A DNA stretch of 64,000 bases, taken from sequence record ON529858.1. One strand, 5' to 3'. The notes beneath the pieces are model-generated. The model made no database searches. It was not told the origin of the DNA and was given only the letters and a program-made list of their open reading frames with translations. Below, piece by piece: positions 8,788-14,928 of this stretch (positions are counted from its first letter, which is position 1; each line of letters begins with the position of its first letter). A program made the position numbers and the translations under genes.

Positions 8788-9300
8788 ATGCTCGTTATCA
8801 ATCTCATCGCTGGCCCTGGCGCCGGCAAGAGCACGTCCGCCGGTATCCTGTTCGGGCTGATGAAGATGGCGAATGAGAAGGTCGAACTGGTCCAGGAATA
8901 CGCCAAGGACAAGACCTACGAACAAGACTGGACGGCGCTGGACAACCAGTTTATGTGCGCCGCCCAGCAGGATCAGAGGCTTCGGCGCCTTCTCGGGCAT
9001 GTCGACTTCTGCATCAACGACTCGGCGCTCCCCCTGGGGCTCGCCTACGCCAAGGCTCCGTTCGACAAGCCCTGGTTCACCGACGCTGTCTGGGGTCTCT
9101 ACGACACCTACAGCAACTTCAACGTCTTCATCGAGCGGGTGAAGCCGTTCCAGCAATACGGCCGCGCCCACAACGAGGCGGAGAGCCGGGAGAAGGACGA
9201 AGAACTGAAGGCCATCTTCGCGGGCCGTATCAATCTGACCGTGCCGGGCGACGCCGCCGCCGGGGCAGTGATATACGAAGCGATCAAGAGATTGTCCTAG
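8788..9300 (+). CDS. P-loop NTPase, AAA_28/NadR-type kinase-like (170 aa)
   Basis: GGAG RBS, ATG at 8788; N-terminal VINLIAGPGAGKST Walker A, followed by VELVQEYAKD. Confidence 0.75.
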   Translation: MLVINLIAGPGAGKSTSAGILFGLMKMANEKVELVQEYAKDKTYEQDWTALDNQFMCAAQQDQRLRRLLGHVDFCINDSALPLGLAYAKAPFDKPWFTDAVWGLYDTYSNFNVFIERVKPFQQYGRAHNEAESREKDEELKAIFAGRINLTVPGDAAAGAVIYEAIKRLS

Positions 9301-9320
9301 CCCTCGGGCCGGGACCACAT

Positions 9321-9408
9321 GCGGGTCTGCTGGAGTGGACGAACAGGGCGGTCTCCAAAACCGCTAGGCGAAAGCCTCACAGGGGTTCGAATCCTCTGGC
9401 CCGTGCCA
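9321..9408 (+). tRNA. tRNA-Trp(CCA) with long variable arm
   Basis: Acceptor GCGGGTC/GGCCCGT, G73, CCA; anticodon arm GCGGT-CTCCAAA-ACCGC; variable arm AGGC-GAAA-GCCT. Confidence 0.85.
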
Positions 9409-9415
9409 AAATAAT

Positions 9416-9489
9416 GCGGCCGTAGCCAAGCGGTAAGGCACCGGATTTCCACTCCGGCAGCGCGGGTTCGATCCCCGCTGGCCGCTCCA
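9416..9489 (+). tRNA. tRNA-Gly(TCC)
   Basis: CCGGA-TTTCCAC-TCCGG anticodon arm; GGTTCGAT T-loop; TCCA end. Confidence 0.92.
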
Positions 9490-9616
9490 TCTACACTGAG
9501 GCCAGCCGGGCATTTCATCCTCCGGCTGGGGTAACGAAAAGGCAGTAGCCGGGGTTGTGCCGGCGAACCCGCCCAGAGGCTGGACCTGGGCTCCCTCGGA
9601 CGACGTGCCTACCGAC

Positions 9617-9692
9617 GCGACCATCGTATCATTGGTGAATACACTGCGTTGCCAACGCGGGGAGGGGAGTTCGATTCTCCCTGGTCGCTCCA
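9617..9692 (+). tRNA. tRNA-Gly(GCC)
   Basis: Acceptor GCGACCA/TGGTCGC; CTGCG-TTGCCAA-CGCGG; TCCA end. Confidence 0.9.
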
Positions 9693-9702
9693 TTTTCAAA
9701 AA

Positions 9703-9746
9703 TCTACGTCAAAGTTCTTGACGTAGAGATCAACCGAGTATATAAG
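9703..9746 (+). promoter_or_regulatory. Promoter for the Glu/Asp tRNA block
   Basis: TCTACGTC-N9-GACGTAGA inverted repeat; TTGACG(9718)-N17-TATAAG(9741). Predicted start site coincides with ATG 9754 (leaderless mRNA). Confidence 0.8.
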
Positions 9747-9753
9747 CCATCCT

Positions 9754-9819
9754 ATGACGCACTTCCTGACCATTCGAGAGAGCGAGACCCACACGGGTCG
9801 AGATACGCGCGCCGCCTAG
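9754..9819 (+). CDS. Candidate leader peptide 1 (MTHFLTIRESETHTGRDTRAA, 21 aa)
   Basis: ATG ~7 nt after the -10 box; stop lies in the loop of a long hairpin that ends at TTTT just before tRNA-Glu. Confidence 0.5.
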   Translation: MTHFLTIRESETHTGRDTRAA

Positions 9820-9853
9820 ACAGCGGCACTCGTAGTCGACGGCCCGTGCTTTT

Positions 9854-9932
9854 GGAGCCGTCTTCTAAATGGACTAGGAAAACAGCCTTTCAAGCTGCTG
9901 AATGCGGGTTCGATCCCCGTCGGCTCTACCAA
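9854..9932 (+). tRNA. tRNA-Glu(TTC), irregular anticodon arm
   Basis: Acceptor GGAGCCG/CGGCTCT; CAGC-CTTTTCAA-GCTG gives an 8-nt loop or a bulged stem; ACCA end. Confidence 0.8.
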
Positions 9933-9963
9933 AGCACTCTACGAAAACGCTGCTCATCTTTAT

Positions 9964-10038
9964 GGTGCGCTCTTCTATCGGTTAAGAACACCCGTTGTCT
10001 GCGGGAAAAGCGGGGTTCGATTCCCCGGCGCATCGCCA
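9964..10038 (+). tRNA. tRNA-Asp(GTC)
   Basis: Acceptor GGTGCGC/GCGCATC; CCCG-TTGTCTG-CGGG; GCCA end. Confidence 0.88.
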
Positions 10039-10179
10039 CCTTTTTCGTGCCTACCCTCACTTTTGTTCTTGACGAACGTCGTCAATCGTGAGACACGTCG
10101 ATCCAACAACACCGGTCACGCCTCTCTTCGATGCGCCTCAGATCGGTTTCTCCTTTCATCCTTCGCAGGAACCTTCATC

Positions 10180-10308
10180 GTGACCACCCTGTCGCACAAG
10201 CTGAGCCTGAAGAGCGCCCCGTCGGCGTTGCTTTCGCTCGCCCATGCGCCGGCCACGCTGAAGTCCACCCCCGCCACCGTGGCGTCCACCTCGGAGACCT
10301 TCTCGTAA
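10180..10308 (+). CDS. Leader peptide 2 (42 aa; Thr/Leu/Ser/His/Lys/Ala/Pro sensor)
   Basis: AGGA RBS at 10167, GTG start; MTTLSHKLSLKSAPSALLSLAHAPATLKSTPATVASTSETFS. Residues 2-33 all belong to the 7 amino acids of the downstream tRNA block. Confidence 0.8.
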   Translation: MTTLSHKLSLKSAPSALLSLAHAPATLKSTPATVASTSETFS

Positions 10309-10374
10309 GGTCTCAGCAGGTGGCGCCCCCTGGGGCCTCACCTGCGAAATGCTTCCCAAGCACCCAGCAGTTGT

Positions 10375-10408
10375 AGGTCCCAGGCGCCAGCCTCGGGGCC
10401 TTTTTCTT
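10375..10408 (+). terminator. Intrinsic terminator (attenuator) upstream of tRNA block 2
   Basis: AGGTCCCAGG-CGCCAG-CCT(C)GGGGCCT followed by TTTTCTT. The 5' arm can alternatively pair with CCTGGGGCCT at 10329-10338. Confidence 0.75.
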
Positions 10409-10420
10409 GTCCAAAATCAA

Positions 10421-10497
10421 CGGTGTTTAGCGCAGTCTGGTAGCGCACTCGGTCCGGAACCGAGGGGTCGCAGGTTCAAATCCTGCAACGCCGACCA
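10421..10497 (+). tRNA. tRNA-Pro(CGG)
   Basis: CTCGG-TCCGGAA-CCGAG (C33, A37); C1-G72, A73, CCA. Confidence 0.88.
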
Positions 10498-10505
10498 TCC
10501 ATCAT

Positions 10506-10580
10506 CTGGGTCTGGCCGAACGGTTAGGCACCTCGTTTGGGGCGAGGACTATGCGGGTTCGAGCCCTGCGGCCCAGACCA
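10506..10580 (+). tRNA. tRNA-Pro(TGG)
   Basis: CCTCG-TTTGGGG-CGAGG; acceptor CTGGGTC/GGCCCAG; ACCA end. Confidence 0.9.
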
Positions 10581-10588
10581 TCTTCAAC

Positions 10589-10665
10589 CGGTGTTTAGCG
10601 CAGTCTGGTAGCGCACTTGCTCGGGAAGCAAGGGGTCGCAGGTTCAAATCCTGCAACGCCGACCA
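10589..10665 (+). tRNA. tRNA-Pro(GGG)
   Basis: CTTGC-TCGGGAA-GCAAG; otherwise identical to 10421-10497 (duplication with a different anticodon arm). Confidence 0.88.
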
Positions 10666-10671
10666 ACAAAT

Positions 10672-10744
10672 GCCATGGCCTCGGGATTGGGGCCGGCCCC
10701 TTGGTATGGGGAAGAGCAGGGTTCGAGTCCCTGCCATGGCTCCA
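10672..10744 (+). tRNA. tRNA-Thr(GGT)
   Basis: Acceptor GCCATGG/CCATGGC; CCCC-TTGGTAT-GGGG; TCCA end. Confidence 0.82.
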
Positions 10745-10752
10745 AGTTTCAT

Positions 10753-10823
10753 GCCTGCGCCTCGTGGGAGGTCGGCCCTTTCGTAGTGGGCCAGCGAGGG
10801 TTCGACACCGTCCGCAGGCTCCA
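10753..10823 (+). tRNA. tRNA-Thr(CGT), compact D arm
   Basis: Acceptor GCCTGCG/CGCAGGC; GCCCT-TTCGTAG-TGGGC; same G1-C72, C2-G71, U73 as the adjacent Thr tRNA. Confidence 0.72.
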
Positions 10824-10893
10824 TCATCAACCAACGAGCCTGAGAGGCAGGCAGCGATCTTAGCCCACACACCGGCGGATCGCAACAAGATAC

Positions 10894-10982
10894 GGACGTG
10901 TAAACCCCTAGCGGCGATGGGTGCGGGCTCTTAATCCGCTGTCGAAAGACCACCGTGAGTTCGAGTCTCACCACGTTCTCCA
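10894..10982 (+). tRNA. tRNA-Lys(CTT) with long variable arm
   Basis: Acceptor GGACGTG/CACGTTC; GCGGG-CTCTTAA-TCCGC; variable arm GTC-GAAA-GAC; U73. Confidence 0.82.
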
Positions 10983-10984
10983 TC

Positions 10985-11053
10985 ATGTTCCCGATCGGGA
11001 TCATCTCGTGCCGGCGCCGTCGAAAGCGCCCCGGATGTTCCCGATCGGGATCA
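10985..11053 (+). repeat. 19-bp direct repeat ATGTTCCCGATCGGGATCA, two copies, each with a 12-bp palindrome
   Basis: Exact copies at 10985-11003 and 11035-11053. Confidence 0.85.
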
Positions 11054-11063
11054 CACAGATCAT

Positions 11064-11148
11064 CCCGGTCTGGCGAAGTAGTAGACGCGCTGTCCTCAGA
11101 AGGCAGTGTCCTTGTGACGGGAGGGTGCGAGTCCCTCGACCGGGACCA
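11064..11148 (+). tRNA. tRNA-Leu(CAG)
   Basis: CTGTC-CTCAGAA-GGCAG; long variable arm; T-loop TGCGAGT; A73. Confidence 0.87.
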
Positions 11149-11156
11149 ACATCTCT

Positions 11157-11242
11157 GCCCGACTGGTCGGAATCGGTAGACGCAGCGACCTCAAAAGTCG
11201 TGGCCTTCGGGCGTCCCGGTTCAAGTCCGGGGTCGGGCACCA
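11157..11242 (+). tRNA. tRNA-Leu(CAA)
   Basis: GCGAC-CTCAAAA-GTCGT; long variable arm; ACCA end. Confidence 0.92.
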
Positions 11243-11250
11243 AACCTCAT

Positions 11251-11335
11251 CCTGGGGTGACGAAGCTGGTAGACGTGGCGGTCTGAGAGGCCGCTGTCGA
11301 AAGACGGGCGGGTTCGAATCCCGCTCCCAGGACCA
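11251..11335 (+). tRNA. tRNA-Leu(GAG)
   Basis: GCGGT-CTGAGAG-GCCGC; long variable arm; ACCA end. Confidence 0.9.
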
Positions 11336-11346
11336 AGGGTTTCTAT

Positions 11347-11419
11347 GCTGTCAGGCGCTTGGTGCGCAGGCTGGGTTGTGTCCCCGGTCGGTTGGGTTCG
11401 AAACCTAATGACAGTGCCA
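11347..11419 (+). tRNA. tRNA-His(GTG), no encoded G-1
   Basis: Acceptor GCTGTCA/TGACAGT; CTGGG-TTGTGTC-CCCGG. Absence of G-1 is an established trait of tRNA-His in several alphaproteobacterial orders including Caulobacterales. Confidence 0.78.
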
Positions 11420-11425
11420 TTTCAT

Positions 11426-11499
11426 GGGGTTGGGGCTTGGGTCCCAGGTTCGTTTTGCAAACCTACCGTGTCGGGTTCGAATCCCGATGACTCCACCAA
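11426..11499 (+). tRNA. tRNA-Ala(TGC), irregular anticodon stem
   Basis: Acceptor GGGGTTG/TGACTCC gives G3:U70 and A73 (Ala identity); loop TTTGCAA closed by GT/AC within a mismatched stem. Confidence 0.65.
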
Positions 11500-11564
11500 C
11501 ACGGCGCCGGGCACGGCGCCACCGTTCGCTGACATCGCGAGATGTTCGCGATCGACGACATCAT

Positions 11565-11654
11565 GGAAGGCTGGCTGAGTCCGGTTTAAGGCACCGGTTT
11601 CGAAAACCGGCGGACCGAAAGGTCCCGTGGGTTCGAATCCCACGCCTTCCTCCA
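11565..11654 (+). tRNA. tRNA-Ser(CGA)
   Basis: CCGGT-TTCGAAA-ACCGG; long variable arm GGACC-GAAA-GGTCC; U73. Confidence 0.9.
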
Positions 11655-11660
11655 CATCAT

Positions 11661-11750
11661 GGTAGGCTGGCTGAGTCTGGCTGAAGGCACCCGCCCGGAA
11701 AGCGGACAGACCGCAAGGTCTCCAGGGTTCAAATCCCTGGCCTACCTCCA
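11661..11750 (+). tRNA. tRNA-Ser(GGA)
   Basis: CCGC-CCGGAAA-GCGG (C33); long variable arm; U73. Confidence 0.87.
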
Positions 11751-11883
11751 AGCTGGGTCCCAGCACCGACGGCGCCCTTCAAGCGCCGGGTCTGCTGGGG
11801 GCAAGAGCCCGAGCCGTTGCTGACACCCCTATCGTGTGGGGACGTAAGGCACACGAGGCCGGCGGGCTGCGCCCTTGTATCAC

Positions 11884-11970
11884 GGATGGTGAACCCTGGG
11901 CGGCCAGGGCGCCGGTTGCTAACCGAACGGAGCCGCAAGGCCTGGGGTTCGAGTCCTCCGCCATCCGCCA
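11884..11970 (+). tRNA. tRNA-Ser(GCT)
   Basis: Acceptor GGATGGT/GCCATCC; loop TTGCTAA; long variable arm; GCCA followed by a T-tract. Confidence 0.85.
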
Positions 11971-11986
11971 CTTTTTTCGCAACAAT

Positions 11987-12029
11987 CTACGTCGCGGATG
12001 TTGACGCCCGCCGGGCGCTCTGGCATCAA
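11987..12029 (+). promoter_or_regulatory. Promoter motif upstream of candidate ncRNA and def
   Basis: ACGTC-GCGGATGTT-GACGC with TTGACG at 12001-12006; the -10 box is weak. Confidence 0.55.
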
Positions 12030-12435
12030 GGTCCCAGGTCGAAGCGGCCGGCAGGTTTCACCTCCCACCGCCCAGCGAGACCTCAGTGTGGAGTTCTTGG
12101 TTGCCTCTCCCGAACAAGGGCGACCACAAAATCACGGTCCGTCCGGGGGTCACCGGACGGGGTAACTCGACGGGTTGATCCTCCGGCTGAGCCACCCGAC
12201 TACCGCGTGCGCTCAGACAGGTCCTGGGTCGCAGAGTCCTAGCCCTGTCCCCTGCTGCTAGGCTGGGGTTCAATGGAACCAGGGCCGTTCTGAGCGCACG
12301 CGGTTCAATAGCTTCGGCAGAGCATGAGGGTGGATTGGGGCCGTGACTCCCCGGTCCGGCGCCGTCACGGGCGCACATGCGCTCCGCCCGCAGTGGTGGA
12401 GAGAACCCGGTTCGAGTCCGGGGCCGAGGACCGCA
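12030..12435 (+). ncRNA. Candidate ~400-nt structured ncRNA ending in a tRNA-like T arm
   Basis: Perfect 16-bp helix 12202-12217/12289-12304; several hairpins; CCCGG-TTCGAGT-CCGGG at 12406-12422; no convincing ORF. Confidence 0.55.
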
Positions 12436-12449
12436 CAGGAGAAGACCCG

Positions 12450-13001
12450 TTGATACGCCCGATCGTCTCTTGCACCGATCCCTTCCTCCGCATCCCGTCC
12501 GTCGAGATCGCCACGATCACCCAGGACGTCCGCGACCTCGCCCGCGATCTGGTCGAGACCGCCCTGCACCATGAGGCCGCCGGCATCGCCGCGCCCCAGG
12601 TCGGCGCCGGCCTGCGCATGGTCTGCTACATCGACGTCCCCGGCGCCACGAACCTGCCCCAGGTCCACCTCAAGCAGTTCTGGAAGCCGACGATCCTGAT
12701 TAACCCCGTGATCTCCAAGGCCTCCGAGGCGATGATCGAGTGGGATGAGGGATGCCTGTCGATGCCGGGCTCCTACTTCCCCGTCAGCCGCCACCGCCTG
12801 ATCGACGTCAGCTACACCGACCTCAACGGCGAGACCCAGACCATCACCGACGCCGGCGGCTACAAGGCCATCTGCCTCCAGCACGAGATCGACCACCTCG
12901 ACGGCATCTTGAACATCGACCGCATCGTCGGCCCGCTCAAGAAGGCTATGATCATGACCTCCTGGCGCAAGGCCCAGCGCCGCGCCCAGCGGGCCGCCTG
13001 A
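12450..13001 (+). CDS. def: Peptide deformylase (183 aa)
   Basis: AGGAG RBS with TTG start; motifs GIAAPQVG, EGCLS and QHEIDHLDG (HEXXH). Confidence 0.95.
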   Translation: MIRPIVSCTDPFLRIPSVEIATITQDVRDLARDLVETALHHEAAGIAAPQVGAGLRMVCYIDVPGATNLPQVHLKQFWKPTILINPVISKASEAMIEWDEGCLSMPGSYFPVSRHRLIDVSYTDLNGETQTITDAGGYKAICLQHEIDHLDGILNIDRIVGPLKKAMIMTSWRKAQRRAQRAA

Positions 13002-13017
13002 AACTTTTTCTGAAAAA

Positions 13018-13060
13018 GTTCGTCGTTGTTCTTGACGAACCGATCCACTTAGTGTAGACA
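13018..13060 (+). promoter_or_regulatory. Promoter for tRNA block 3
   Basis: GTTCGTC-N9-GACGAAC perfect inverted repeat; TTGACG(13032)-N17-TAGACA(13055). Predicted start site at ATG 13068 (leaderless). Confidence 0.8.
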
Positions 13061-13067
13061 TCGCTTC

Positions 13068-13163
13068 ATGACCTCCTATCGCCAAAACGTGCAGAACATT
13101 CGAGTCGTCCGGTTTAACCGGACGGGCCGTTCGCATGTGCGTGATAGTGGGACCCAGATTTAG
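13068..13163 (+). CDS. Leader peptide 3 (31 aa; Tyr/Arg/Gln/Asn/Val/Ile/Phe sensor)
   Basis: MTSYRQNVQNIRVVRFNRTGRSHVRDSGTQI; residues 4-18 all belong to the 7 amino acids of the downstream tRNA block. Confidence 0.82.
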   Translation: MTSYRQNVQNIRVVRFNRTGRSHVRDSGTQI

Positions 13164-13195
13164 GGTCGTAGACCCCACCCTCCACCGCTTCGAAT

Positions 13196-13230
13196 GGCCC
13201 GTCTGGTAACCCAGGCGGGCCTTTTCTTTT
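13196..13230 (+). terminator. Intrinsic terminator (attenuator) upstream of tRNA block 3
   Basis: GGCCCGTCTGG-TAAC-CCAGGCGGGCC followed by TTTTCTTTT. The 5' arm is complementary over 11 bp to CCGGACGGGCC (13118-13128) inside the leader ORF. Confidence 0.85.
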
Positions 13231-13266
13231 GTCCAAAATCCTCAAGGAAAACATCAAGATCACCCT

Positions 13267-13349
13267 GGGTGGTGAAAGTCAGTTGGCTCTGACAGCGGTC
13301 TGTAACACCGCGCCGCAAGGGAGGGGTTCGATGCCCTCACCACCCACCA
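13267..13349 (+). tRNA. tRNA-Tyr(GTA)
   Basis: GCGGT-CTGTAAC-ACCGC; acceptor GGGTGGT/ACCACCC; ACCA end. Confidence 0.85.
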
Positions 13350-13350
13350 C

Positions 13351-13425
13351 CGTTCCATAGCTGAGATAGAATAGCGCGGGCTTGAAAACCCCGAGACGGA
13401 GATGCGAACGCTCCTGGGACGGCCA
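13351..13425 (+). tRNA. tRNA-Phe(GAA)
   Basis: Loop TTGAAAA; acceptor CGTTCCA/TGGGACG; atypical T-loop TGCGAAC and G73. Confidence 0.75.
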
Positions 13426-13441
13426 ACATTTCGAACTTCGA

Positions 13442-13516
13442 AGCGCTTTAGCCAAGTAGAAAGGCACGGCTGTGACATGGCCGCACGCGCTGGTGCGATT
13501 CCAGCAAGCGCTACCA
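13442..13516 (+). tRNA. tRNA-Val(GAC)
   Basis: CGGCT-GTGACAT-GGCCG; acceptor AGCGCTT/AAGCGCT; T-loop TGCGATT. Confidence 0.85.
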
Positions 13517-13521
13517 AGTTT

Positions 13522-13595
13522 TCTCTCGTAGCATAAAAGTGATGCGAGCGGCTGATAACCGCTAGAAGAAGGTGCGATACCTTCCGGGAGGACCA
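13522..13595 (+). tRNA. tRNA-Ile(GAT)
   Basis: AGCGG-CTGATAA-CCGCT; T-loop TGCGATA; ACCA end. Confidence 0.87.
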
Positions 13596-13661
13596 AATCG
13601 GCCGGGGATGCTTCCCCGGCCCTCATCAACGCTTAGATCGAAAGGTCAACGACTAAACCAC

Positions 13662-13736
13662 AGCGTGTTAGGCAAGTAGAAATCCGGGGGTGTCACATAC
13701 CTCTATGCGAGGGTGCGATTCCTTCACACGCTACCA
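13662..13736 (+). tRNA. tRNA-Val(CAC)
   Basis: GGGGT-GTCACAT-ACCTC; acceptor AGCGTGT/ACACGCT. Confidence 0.83.
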
Positions 13737-13751
13737 ACTATACTTCTGTGA

Positions 13752-13829
13752 TGCCGGGTGGCGGAACTGGTAGACGCAGCACGCTTTGAACGTGTATAAC
13801 TGTGGGTTCGAGTCCTACGCCGGCAGCCA
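13752..13829 (+). tRNA. tRNA-Gln(TTG)
   Basis: GCACG-CTTTGAA-CGTGT; U1-A72, G73. Confidence 0.85.
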
Positions 13830-13884
13830 GAAGTATCGACGAAGTCTAGTCCGCTCTAAGGACTGAAGATCGTGAGGGTTTTGT

Positions 13885-13970
13885 TTGCTCGTGGCGGAAG
13901 CGGGTAGACGTGCCGGACTGTTAATCCGGGGCCGAAAGGCGTGCAGGTTCGAGGCCTGCCGGGCAAGCCA
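13885..13970 (+). tRNA. tRNA-Asn(GTT) with long variable arm
   Basis: CCGGA-CTGTTAA-TCCGG; variable arm GCC-GAAA-GGC; GCCA end. Confidence 0.85.
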
Positions 13971-13988
13971 AACCCTCATCAAGATCAC

Positions 13989-14071
13989 GTCGCTCTAACC
14001 GGGCCGGTCTACGAAACCGGTCGCCGTAGCTGGAGTTGAAAAGGGTGGTTCGAGTCCACTGAGCGACGCCA
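13989..14071 (+). tRNA. Atypical tRNA-Arg(ACG): no D arm, 23-nt variable region
   Basis: Acceptor GTCGCTC/GAGCGAC; CCGGT-CTACGAA-ACCGG; canonical T arm; GCCA end. Confidence 0.65.
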
Positions 14072-14090
14072 TACTTTCGAGCCGACCAAC

Positions 14091-14165
14091 GCGCCCAGGT
14101 GGTCCAGTTAGTGGGCGCCGGGCAGTCTACCCGGAGGGTGCGGCGAACATCCGCTCACGGGCGCA
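14091..14165 (+). pseudogene. tRNA-like cloverleaf without a T-loop consensus or CCA (Asp-like GTC loop)
   Basis: GCGCCC/GGGCGC terminal helix; GTCC/GGGC arm; CCGGG-CAGTCTA-CCCGG; GCGG-CGAACAT-CCGC; abuts the next tRNA. Confidence 0.4.
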
Positions 14166-14265
14166 GTCCCGGCTCGATCCACGTCTCGGTAACCGGTCCG
14201 GCTTCCGAAGCCGGGAGCCGTAGCTGGAGTTGAGAAGGGTGGTTCGAACCCACTCCGGGACGCCA
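14166..14265 (+). tRNA. Atypical tRNA-Arg(CCG), 100 nt
   Basis: Acceptor GTCCCGG/CCGGGAC; CCGGC-TTCCGAA-GCCGG; shares the variable segment GCCGTAGCTGGAGTTGA with Arg(ACG). Confidence 0.65.
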
Positions 14266-14272
14266 TCAACAT

Positions 14273-14347
14273 GCCGGCGACGCCTATTGGATGGGCGCCC
14301 GCCTTCTAAGCGGTCCTGGGTAGGTTCGAGTCCTTCCGCCGGCGCCA
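14273..14347 (+). tRNA. tRNA-Arg(TCT)
   Basis: CCGC-CTTCTAA-GCGG; acceptor GCCGGCG/CGCCGGC; GCCA end. Confidence 0.88.
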
Positions 14348-14384
14348 TAGTTCTTGACGCCGACCGCGTCACCCTCCATACATC

Positions 14385-14767
14385 TGCCAGGGCCTGTTCC
14401 TGGGCCTGGACTACGGAATGCGGGGACCTTTCGCGAGGGCGCCTTGGCGGACCGAAACCAGCAGATCGAACGCGGCTCGCCGTGGAGGTCTGAGGGAAAT
14501 CCGAAACCAGGGCCTTCCATCTCACCGACGACAACCTGGGGCATACGCCGGGTCGAGACGGGACACGGGCCGGTGCCGCTATGGACGGCCCCCGAAGGAA
14601 GCGACGACCGTGCCGCGTCGCCCTGCGCGGTCGTCACTATTCTAGCGGCCCGTCCTTGAGAAAGACGGGGTTGAGAGGCACGGAACGCGGTTCACCCCCG
14701 CCGCCCAAGGCAGACGGATCGGAAATGCAGCCACGCTACGGCCGATCCCCGCTCTCATATTTTTTTT
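14385..14767 (+). ncRNA. Candidate ~380-nt structured ncRNA
   Basis: Preceded by TTGACG-N17-CATACA; long-range helix 14441-14450/14701-14711 with internal hairpins; ends at a T8 tract; no credible ORF. Confidence 0.5.
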
Positions 14768-14778
14768 GACGCTACCCG

Positions 14779-14928
14779 TTGACAAGGTCCGGGTAGGGTT
14801 CTACAACCCCATTCGTGAGCACGGCAATACCACGGGCGCCCGCCAATCGGGTGAGGTAACGCTGGTCTCCTTTCATCCGTCGTCAGATGCACCCCGTCGG
14901 TCCCGTCCGGCGGGGTGTTTCGCTATTT
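14779..14928 (+). ncRNA. Candidate small RNA with its own promoter and terminator
   Basis: TTGACA(14779)-N17-TACAAC(14802); anti-Shine-Dalgarno-like TCTCCTTT at 14866; hairpin GCACCCCGTCGG/CCGGCGGGGTGT at 14889-14918 followed by T-rich sequence. Confidence 0.5.

Follow-up and report, generated by a model that had tools for sequence, protein, structure and literature searches.

Leader peptides matched to the tRNA genes behind them point to ribosome-mediated attenuation in Brevundimonas phage vB_BgoS-Bajun and its relatives

We analysed a stretch of 64,000 nucleotides (nt), hereafter the window, from the genome of Brevundimonas phage vB_BgoS-Bajun (ON529858.1; 207 kb; Dolichocephalovirinae), whose transfer RNA (tRNA) genes lie in blocks, two of which, blocks 2 and 3, are each preceded by a small open reading frame (ORF), here called L2 and L3, made up largely of codons for the amino acids that the tRNAs behind it serve (Table 1). 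Positions are those of the window (record position minus 124000), of which 9300-14700 matches the record 100%. ARAGORN at default settings called 24 tRNAs, Rfam added tRNA-Phe (13351-13422, 40.7 bits), and relaxed ARAGORN settings added Thr(cgt) at 10753, Lys(ctt) at 10894, Ala(tgc) at 11426, Ser(gct) at 11884, Phe(gaa) at 13351 and Arg(ccg) at 14171, many Bajun tRNAs scoring below default detection thresholds. The slots of the relaxed calls hold confidently called tRNAs of the same kind in relatives, and the order of tRNAs is common to the subfamily. We therefore accepted 14 genes for block 2 and 10 for block 3, each block covering seven specificities, which is how a first-pass annotation of this DNA had counted them; its overall total of 29 did not hold, since tRNA-Arg(ccg) 12349-12432 sits between blocks 2 and 3, belongs to neither, and brings the candidates to 30.

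Table 1. Features of the Bajun tRNA region, in window coordinates
Feature	Position	Strand	Basis and remarks
Block 1a: tRNA-Trp, tRNA-Gly(tcc), tRNA-Gly(gcc)	9321-9692	+	ARAGORN, record annotation
-35-like TTGACG, L1b promoter	9718-9723	+	Read from sequence; inside perfect palindrome 9703-9727
L1b ORF, 21 codons, ATG start, probably leaderless; 2 Glu + 1 Asp codons	9754-9819	+	Kept in 11 genomes
L1b long hairpin (9792-9848) with short, weak U-tract (9850-9853)	9792-9853	+	Folding
Block 1b: tRNA-Glu(ttc), tRNA-Asp(gtc)	9854-10038	+	ARAGORN, record annotation
-35-like TTGACG, L2 promoter	10069-10074	+	Within perfect palindrome 10069-10085; 111 nt 5' of L2 start
L2 leader ORF, 42 codons, GTG start	10180-10308	+	Annotated as hypothetical protein BAJUN_02440
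L2 helix C:D, last nine sense codons with the stretch directly 3' of the stop	10281-10327	+	Folding, -30.3 kcal/mol
L2 helix X, competes with C:D and with the antiterminator	10316-10345	+	Folding, -22.3 kcal/mol
L2 antiterminator hairpin, sequesters terminator 5' arm	10329-10384	+	Folding, -31.6 kcal/mol
L2 intrinsic terminator, stem 10375-10401, U-tract to 10408	10375-10408	+	Folding, -19.5 kcal/mol
Block 2: 14 tRNA genes (Pro x3, Thr x2, Lys, Leu x3, His, Ala, Ser x3)	10421-11970	+	ARAGORN default/relaxed, order as in relatives
-35-like TTGACG, L3 promoter	13032-13037	+	Overlaps perfect palindrome 13018-13040
L3 leader ORF, 31 codons, ATG start, without Shine-Dalgarno, probably leaderless	13068-13163	+	
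L3 helix 1:2, Val-Val-Arg codons paired with region 2	13105-13125	+	Folding; RNAalifold
L3 antiterminator, region 2 (13119-13128) with terminator 5' arm (13196-13205)	13119-13205	+	Compensatory changes, occlusion folding
L3 intrinsic terminator, stem 13196-13221, U-tract 13222-13230	13196-13230	+	Folding, RNAalifold
Block 3: 10 tRNA genes (Tyr, Phe, Val, Ile, Val, Gln, Asn, Arg x3)	13267-14347	+	ARAGORN default/relaxed, Rfam, order as in relatives

The same annotation had pointed out that both leaders contain runs of codons drawn only from the tRNA sets downstream, and this was borne out. In L2, 32 consecutive codons (10183-10278) specify solely Pro, Thr, Lys, Leu, His, Ala and Ser, and in L3, 15 consecutive codons (13077-13121) specify solely Tyr, Phe, Val, Ile, Gln, Asn and Arg, with all seven amino acids used in each; the enrichment in regulatory codons by which leader-peptide attenuators are recognised is complete over these sensor runs (32/32 and 15/15). 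Against a background of all six reading frames of the window (125,443 residues), neither set has a longer run than these, and the second-longest (23 for set 2 and 12 for set 3) are both out-of-frame stretches of low complexity. Residues of set 2 and set 3 are sharply partitioned between the two leaders (Fisher p = 2.6e-9), the observed division of the 14 amino acids is the only one of 3432 possible 7+7 partitions to fit as well, and random 7+7 draws from the 20 amino acids never did so (0/200,000). The leader sets match the downstream tRNA sets exactly, with significance across the whole window. No such leader ORF was seen before three unrelated phage tRNA clusters found in an IMG/VR PhoH scan, nor at about 45 further sites that carry the same terminator stem.

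These figures bear on the possibility that coincidence put the ORFs beside ordinary terminators, as micro-proteins of low complexity or as by-products of RNA structure that are not translated. High-GC DNA does produce frames rich in Ala, Pro, Ser and Thr, and further long set-2 runs occur in wrong frames; moreover, the peptides of L2, L3 and L1b (a smaller candidate leader before block 1b) match no Pfam or PHROG family. L3, however, abounds in amino acids seldom found in high-GC frames, most of its sensor codons lie outside conserved helices, and the order of its residues has been shuffled with their composition kept. With the partition and random-draw results added, we give a coincidental origin hardly any credence.

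Distant blastn searches found both leader regions conserved at ~70-77% identity in Brevundimonas phages, and the block-3 leader also in ~40 Caulobacter phiCbK-like phages. We compared 16 loci from Shapirovirus, Poindextervirus, Colossusvirus, Bertelyvirus and Brevundimonas phages, together with phiCbK, and added four environmental contigs (L019, L180, L227 and L228), of which L019 is a distant relative recovered in the IMG/VR PhoH scan. Leaders were present in 16/16 Dolichocephalovirinae loci, in phiCbK and in all four contigs, the orthologous loci aligning with conserved leader ORFs, and every locus has the same layout of promoter, leader, hairpins and tRNA block; homologues of L2 in particular were found in 16/16 relatives, phiCbK and L019. 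A metagenome scan with the PhoH alignment returned no close relative having usable flanks, a distant blastn search with the L019 leader returned nothing past the known relatives, and the regions fetched from Lacusarx and Cp1R7A-A1, the next of kin by tail-tube similarity, contained no tRNAs.

Across these leaders the order of the sensor residues varies by lineage, the L3 run reading YRQNVQNIRVVRFNR in Bajun, YRQFVQIQVVRNFR in Rogue, YRNNVRQIRVRQFNL in Colossus and YQIVQQIVVRRNFR in L228. Nevertheless, 187 of the 190 sensor residues in 13 L3 variants fall within the seven-letter set, as against ~24% of residues in the C-terminal tail, which encodes RNA helices. When L3 variants are compared with Bajun, 50/53 replacements remain in the set, where 23% would be expected from single-base changes. 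For L2, 91% of 573 residues lie in the set (background 46.5%) and 138/160 replacements stay within it (44% expected). The enrichment is thereby retained in 13-14 variants. Read from these alignments, the direction is unambiguous despite counts that are not independent: selection acts on leader composition and not on residue order.

The first-pass annotation had proposed two comparative checks of its claim, whether leaders co-vary with the tRNA content of their blocks and whether the helices show covariation, and the first of these was seen. In 14 genomes, whenever a tRNA is called in a block, its amino acid is also present in the leader of that block; only one tRNA(CAT) in L019 breaks this pattern, along with a few relaxed-threshold calls of doubtful standing. 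The Lys codon AAA, which makes up 1% of Lys codons in Bajun genes, is used in L2 in 8/8 genomes with tRNA-Lys(ttt) in block 2 and in 0/6 genomes without it. Likewise, the Trp codon TGG in L2 is confined to Bertelyvirus (L007, L011, L012 and L015), the sole genus with tRNA-Trp in block 2, where this gene has left the first block for the end of block 2. The Leu codons in L2 are of three kinds (CTG, TTG and CTY), as are its Ser codons (TCG, AGC and TCC), which parallels the three Leu and three Ser tRNAs. In L3, mostly 2-3 Asn codons occur where tRNA-Asn(gtt) is present and one in the phiCbK/Rogue group, which is without this tRNA, a trend from which Bertelyvirus departs.

The blocks of relatives show some further peculiarities. 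In Bertelyvirus, tRNA-Phe has shifted to the end of block 3, and no Trp-Gly-Gly block was found in the stretch fetched. In the Rogue/Karma group, a tRNA with anticodon AAT fills the slot held by tRNA-Asn(gtt) in other genera (L003 9937-10011, L006 9883-9957 and L009 9895-9969). Between the L3 terminator and tRNA-Phe, the phiCbK group has a gene resembling tRNA-Tyr(GTA) that carries a long variable arm and no annotation (L006 ~9160-9280, with homologous sites in L016, L010 and L014); the phiCbK genome paper of 2012 reported no Tyr tRNA (PMC3556154).

A -35-like TTGACG stands upstream of each leader. For L3, the distance from the first T of TTGAC to the A of the ATG is 36 nt in 12/14 genomes and 37 nt in the other 2, with diverging sequence in between; for L1b it is 36 nt in Bajun and 35-39 nt across genomes. 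In an alignment of 15 sequences the L3 ATG is invariant, the ORF is 31-32 codons long, and the stop varies between TAG, TAA and TGA at essentially one aligned position. The fixed spacing from the -35 element and the lack of a Shine-Dalgarno sequence in L3 fit a leaderless messenger RNA (mRNA); Caulobacter has many such mRNAs and translates them efficiently (PMC4117421). The L3 and L1b mRNAs are probably both leaderless. L2 has a 5' untranslated region with a Shine-Dalgarno-like AGGAA at 10167-10171, 9 nt 5' of its start codon, and is the only leader with a GTG start, in Brevundimonas phages. With their start, length and stop conserved, L2 and L3 each appear to provide the short, translatable, same-strand ORF in the 5' leader that is expected of an attenuator.

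The perfect palindromes listed in Table 1 overlap the -35 TTGACG of all three leader promoters, and further TTGACG sites near 12001 and 14354 have no overlapping palindrome. These palindromes could form an operator for a dimeric regulator superimposed on attenuation.

In the L3 leader RNA, three mutually exclusive helices can form: helix 1:2, which lies inside the ORF, the antiterminator and the terminator. The terminator is kept in 15/15 aligned relatives with 98.7% of alignment cells paired and 3 pairs showing compensatory change; the antiterminator has 97.3% of cells paired and 2 compensatory pairs (one of them G-C in 11 sequences and A-U in 3), and helix 1:2 has 91.6% paired and 3 compensatory pairs. 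All three exceed slid-register controls, and helix 1:2 and the terminator also emerge independently from RNAalifold. Over region 2, L019 encodes a different peptide but retains the pairing. The second check, covariation in the helices, thus also came out in favour of the earlier claim.

To follow the effect of a ribosome on these helices, partition functions were calculated with a 29-nt ribosome footprint shifted codon by codon, an equilibrium calculation. In Bajun L3, the probability of the terminator is ~1 without a ribosome, falls to 0-0.2 with the A site on sensor codons 4-13, and is ~1 again from codon 16 to the stop. In 8/11 L3 leaders the loss of the terminator is limited to the A site on sensor codons; Kabachok, Rogue, BL57, Karma and RB23 behave as Bajun does, and Gurke and Colossus do so partly. 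Separately, one Bertelyvirus genome (the CcrSC contig in IMG/VR, loci L211, L216, L220 and L221) carries this GC-rich terminator stem several times over, which suggests a reused terminator module.

For Bajun L2, folding predicts a chain of four overlapping helices, C:D, X, antiterminator and terminator. Segment C, the last nine sense codons, comes right after the 32-codon run, and helix C:D is predicted to form only with no ribosome on the 3' end of the ORF. With segment C present, the minimum-energy fold contains C:D and the antiterminator, and with C removed it contains X and the terminator. In Rogue, Karma and Kabachok, the terminator probability is 0-0.4 (in Karma, mostly) with the ribosome in the first ~30 codons and 1.0 with it in the last ~11; the Karma and phiCbK records annotate a terminator at the site homologous to that of L2. 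At the level of prediction, then, both L2 and L3 have a terminator between the ORF and the first regulated gene and an antiterminator that depends on ribosome position, as attenuators do, and the claim that each terminator has a mutually exclusive antiterminator is upheld in silico. The first-pass annotation had also described a motif shared behind the two hairpins and U-tracts. The hairpins and U-tracts stand, and GTCCAAAATC does follow both Bajun terminators (10409-10418 and 13231-13240), but it is absent at the homologous sites of relatives, with a partial match in CcrSC only, and was rejected as a functional motif and as a conserved part of the device.

A third ORF of this type, L1b, 20-21 codons long, lies ahead of the tRNA-Glu and tRNA-Asp genes of 11 genomes; it contains two Glu codons and one for Asp in 9/11, and one of each in 2/11. 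The 5' arm of its hairpin lies inside the ORF, with the Asp codon in the arm and the Glu codons just upstream, and the Karma and phiCbK records mark the homologous hairpin as a rho-independent terminator. L1b is only a candidate because its regulatory codons are few and a ribosome on the 3' half of the ORF would oppose the hairpin.

Such an arrangement raises the question of whether the leaders might be translated without sensing tRNA supply, their translation protecting or processing the 5' part of the pre-tRNA, or blocking Rho, and the terminators insulating the units. This would suit L1b, where any translation would oppose a terminator whose 5' arm is in the ORF, and the presence of L2 without a canonical terminator in two genera. 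It does not explain why leader composition has stayed confined to the downstream specificities through the L3 and L2 replacements counted above, why AAA tracks tRNA-Lys(ttt), or why the antiterminator has undergone compensatory changes, and we consider it quite improbable.

Taken together, this analysis suggests that blocks 2 and 3 are, as is likely, transcription units under ribosome-mediated transcription attenuation, which would match tRNA output to decoding capacity. In each, a host-type promoter would drive a short leader ORF with sensor codons only for the seven amino acids of the downstream tRNAs. On L3, a ribosome slowed on the sensor codons would cover region 1, so that region 2 could pair with the terminator's 5' arm and RNA polymerase would enter the tRNA genes; with a ribosome running through, or with none, helix 1:2 and the terminator would persist. 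The run of 32 codons on L2 may act as an integrating speedometer, any delay within it permitting read-through, as modelled in silico for Bajun, Kabachok, Rogue and Karma: a ribosome late to segment C would allow helix C:D and then the antiterminator to form, and a ribosome on segment C would favour helix X and the terminator. Phages of this kind are reported to replicate in several genera (PMC11434605). As the products are tRNAs of the very specificities sensed, we infer that the circuit is one of negative feedback, which would answer any fall in decoding capacity, be it from the demand of phage mRNA, a poorly matching host tRNA pool or loss of tRNA.

What such a circuit serves depends on the signal. 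It might be classical amino-acid starvation, that is, charging level instead of tRNA amount, so that the units would follow the nutritional state of the host; attenuators cannot tell low charging from a low amount of tRNA, as trp, his, thr and ilv have taught. More tRNA, however, gives no relief from a shortage of amino acids and brings no obvious benefit, and a leader that reads seven amino acids would react to a shortage of any one of them, making it a poor nutritional signal. We therefore regard starvation sensing as improbable.

A further purpose for the same attenuators, put forward in the first-pass annotation, is inducible counter-defence: nucleases or other tRNA-inactivating defences would deplete host tRNAs, and stalled ribosomes would switch on the replacements. 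Phage tRNAs can rescue infection from defences that cleave tRNA, the circuit would by construction respond to tRNA loss, and tRNA shortage would be the more sensible signal because extra tRNA does not cure amino-acid starvation. Long variable arms could also, speculatively, make the phage tRNAs poor nuclease substrates. On the other hand, the specificities sensed, at least 14, far exceed the few tRNAs hit by known anticodon nucleases, the layout is kept across phages of different host genera, and some leader codons are read only by host isoacceptors, a feature that suits general sensing of decoding capacity equally. Demand-driven tRNA homeostasis, or adjustment to host tRNA pools, explains the anatomy equally well. 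We accordingly hold counter-defence to be possible but unlikely, and are just as doubtful of its fullest form, in which the leaders would be real-time sensors of host tRNA integrity for 14-16 amino acids, inducible and self-limiting, and the products replacement tRNAs with long variable arms.

Several observations weigh against the attenuation reading itself, or limit it. The genomes compared represent only ~6-8 independent lineages, so that p-values from pooled counts overstate independence, and leader translation, transcription start sites and terminator activity are inferred from sequence. The match between leader codons and phage tRNAs is imperfect: under standard wobble, leader GCC (Ala) is unreadable by the phage tRNA-Ala(UGC), and CGC and CGA (Arg) in Bajun are unreadable by the phage Arg tRNAs; in CcrPW a Trp codon ends the L3 run with no Trp tRNA in block 3, and in L019 the tRNA(CAT) of block 3 has no matching internal leader codon. 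Nor is the RNA switch predicted uniformly. In the occlusion calculation CcrPW L3 is without a switch, and the L3 antiterminator is dominant at equilibrium in CcrSC and CcrBL9; full-length equilibrium folding of L2 is ambiguous in Bajun and Gurke, and Colossus/CcrPW and Bertelyvirus keep the L2 leader without a canonical U-tract terminator. Finally, block 1a stands directly 3' of a protein gene and has no leader ORF, and L1b is the weaker case, although it may form one more unit, of a simpler kind, that serves Glu and Asp. The proposal of amino-acid-specific units, each behind a matching attenuator of the his/thr/ilv logic, is strongly supported by conservation, composition, co-variation, compensatory changes and occlusion folding, and does not extend to block 1a or, with the same force, to L1b.

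Some features of the tRNA genes and their neighbours deserve mention in their own right. The genes tRNA-Trp 9321-9408, tRNA-Lys 10894-10982, tRNA-Asn 13885-13970 and tRNA-Arg 13989-14071 have lengths of 83-89 nt, and ARAGORN models those for Trp, Lys and Asn with long variable arms, which are unusual for these specificities. Apart from the tRNAs, the record annotates a peptide deformylase between the blocks, whose coding sequence, from its annotated start at 12324, overlaps tRNA-Arg(ccg) 12349-12432; a TTG at 12451 would yield a normal deformylase N-terminus, and the annotated start is therefore probably wrong.

An earlier paper described the tRNA clusters of phiCbK-like phages and explained them by the supply of codons (Gill et al. 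2012, PMC3556154); that paper, in which terminators were predicted with TransTermHP, mentions no leader or attenuator and no RNA element besides the tRNAs. The Karma and phiCbK records list terminators before the tRNA blocks without interpreting them, and a search of the full-text literature found no description of leader peptides or attenuation before phage tRNA genes. A leader-peptide-like region may lie upstream of E. coli pheV and would be an older precedent, but we could not confirm it: the phage tRNA-Phe has no match in E. coli, and the papers found do not mention a leader-like region before pheV.

Why phages carry tRNA genes, and how these are controlled, is a long-standing question, to which the sequence points to an answer: the phage appears to gauge how fast each of two seven-amino-acid sets is decoded, and to transcribe the tRNA genes that match when decoding lags. 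If true, this would be the first case found in which tRNA genes are governed by leader-peptide attenuation, no attenuator described would be more multivalent, and a virus would encode a loop of negative feedback on the supply of tRNA. The device is present in phiCbK, a phage that is classic in laboratory work on Caulobacter crescentus, which makes it checkable by ordinary expression measurements. Furthermore, a leader whose composition equals the downstream tRNA set is a simple sequence signature that can be searched for in other genomes.

The closest models are the his, trp, leu and pheA attenuators of enterobacteria, which likewise have a short ORF enriched in regulatory codons, a terminator before the first gene, and helices 1:2, 2:3 and 3:4, or a longer alternating chain as in his, from which a stalled ribosome favours the antiterminator. 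Unlike these, the device described here is encoded by a phage, regulates tRNAs and not biosynthetic enzymes, reads seven amino acids per leader instead of one, and in the case of L3 is apparently leaderless. Attenuators of this class are defined by targets in biosynthesis, transport or aminoacyl-tRNA synthetases, and tRNAs as targets depart from it. Nor is there an Rfam match: no leader family was found at E <= 1 in 9200-14800, and none at the gathering threshold in the whole window. The thr (Thr and Ile) and ilvGMEDA or ilvBN (Ile, Leu and Val) leaders also sense several amino acids, in mixed runs resembling that of L2, but these number two or three and belong to a common pathway, whereas here the sole link among the seven is the co-transcription of their tRNAs.

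Control of the translation apparatus by a leader has a precedent in the pheST attenuator of E. coli (leader pheM), in which a loop senses charged tRNA, although there the product is a synthetase, the amino acid a single one and the gene cellular. T-box riboswitches also sense the state of tRNA, choose between terminator and antiterminator, and govern translation-related genes; in these, however, the RNA binds uncharged tRNA directly and needs no ORF, on which the device here depends, and T-box (RF00230) gave no Rfam match in 9200-14800 or in the whole window. Lastly, trpL of Sinorhizobium meliloti (PMC6614838) reads a single amino acid ahead of a biosynthetic operon, but it establishes that ribosome-mediated attenuation operates in the Alphaproteobacteria, the class to which the hosts of this phage belong.

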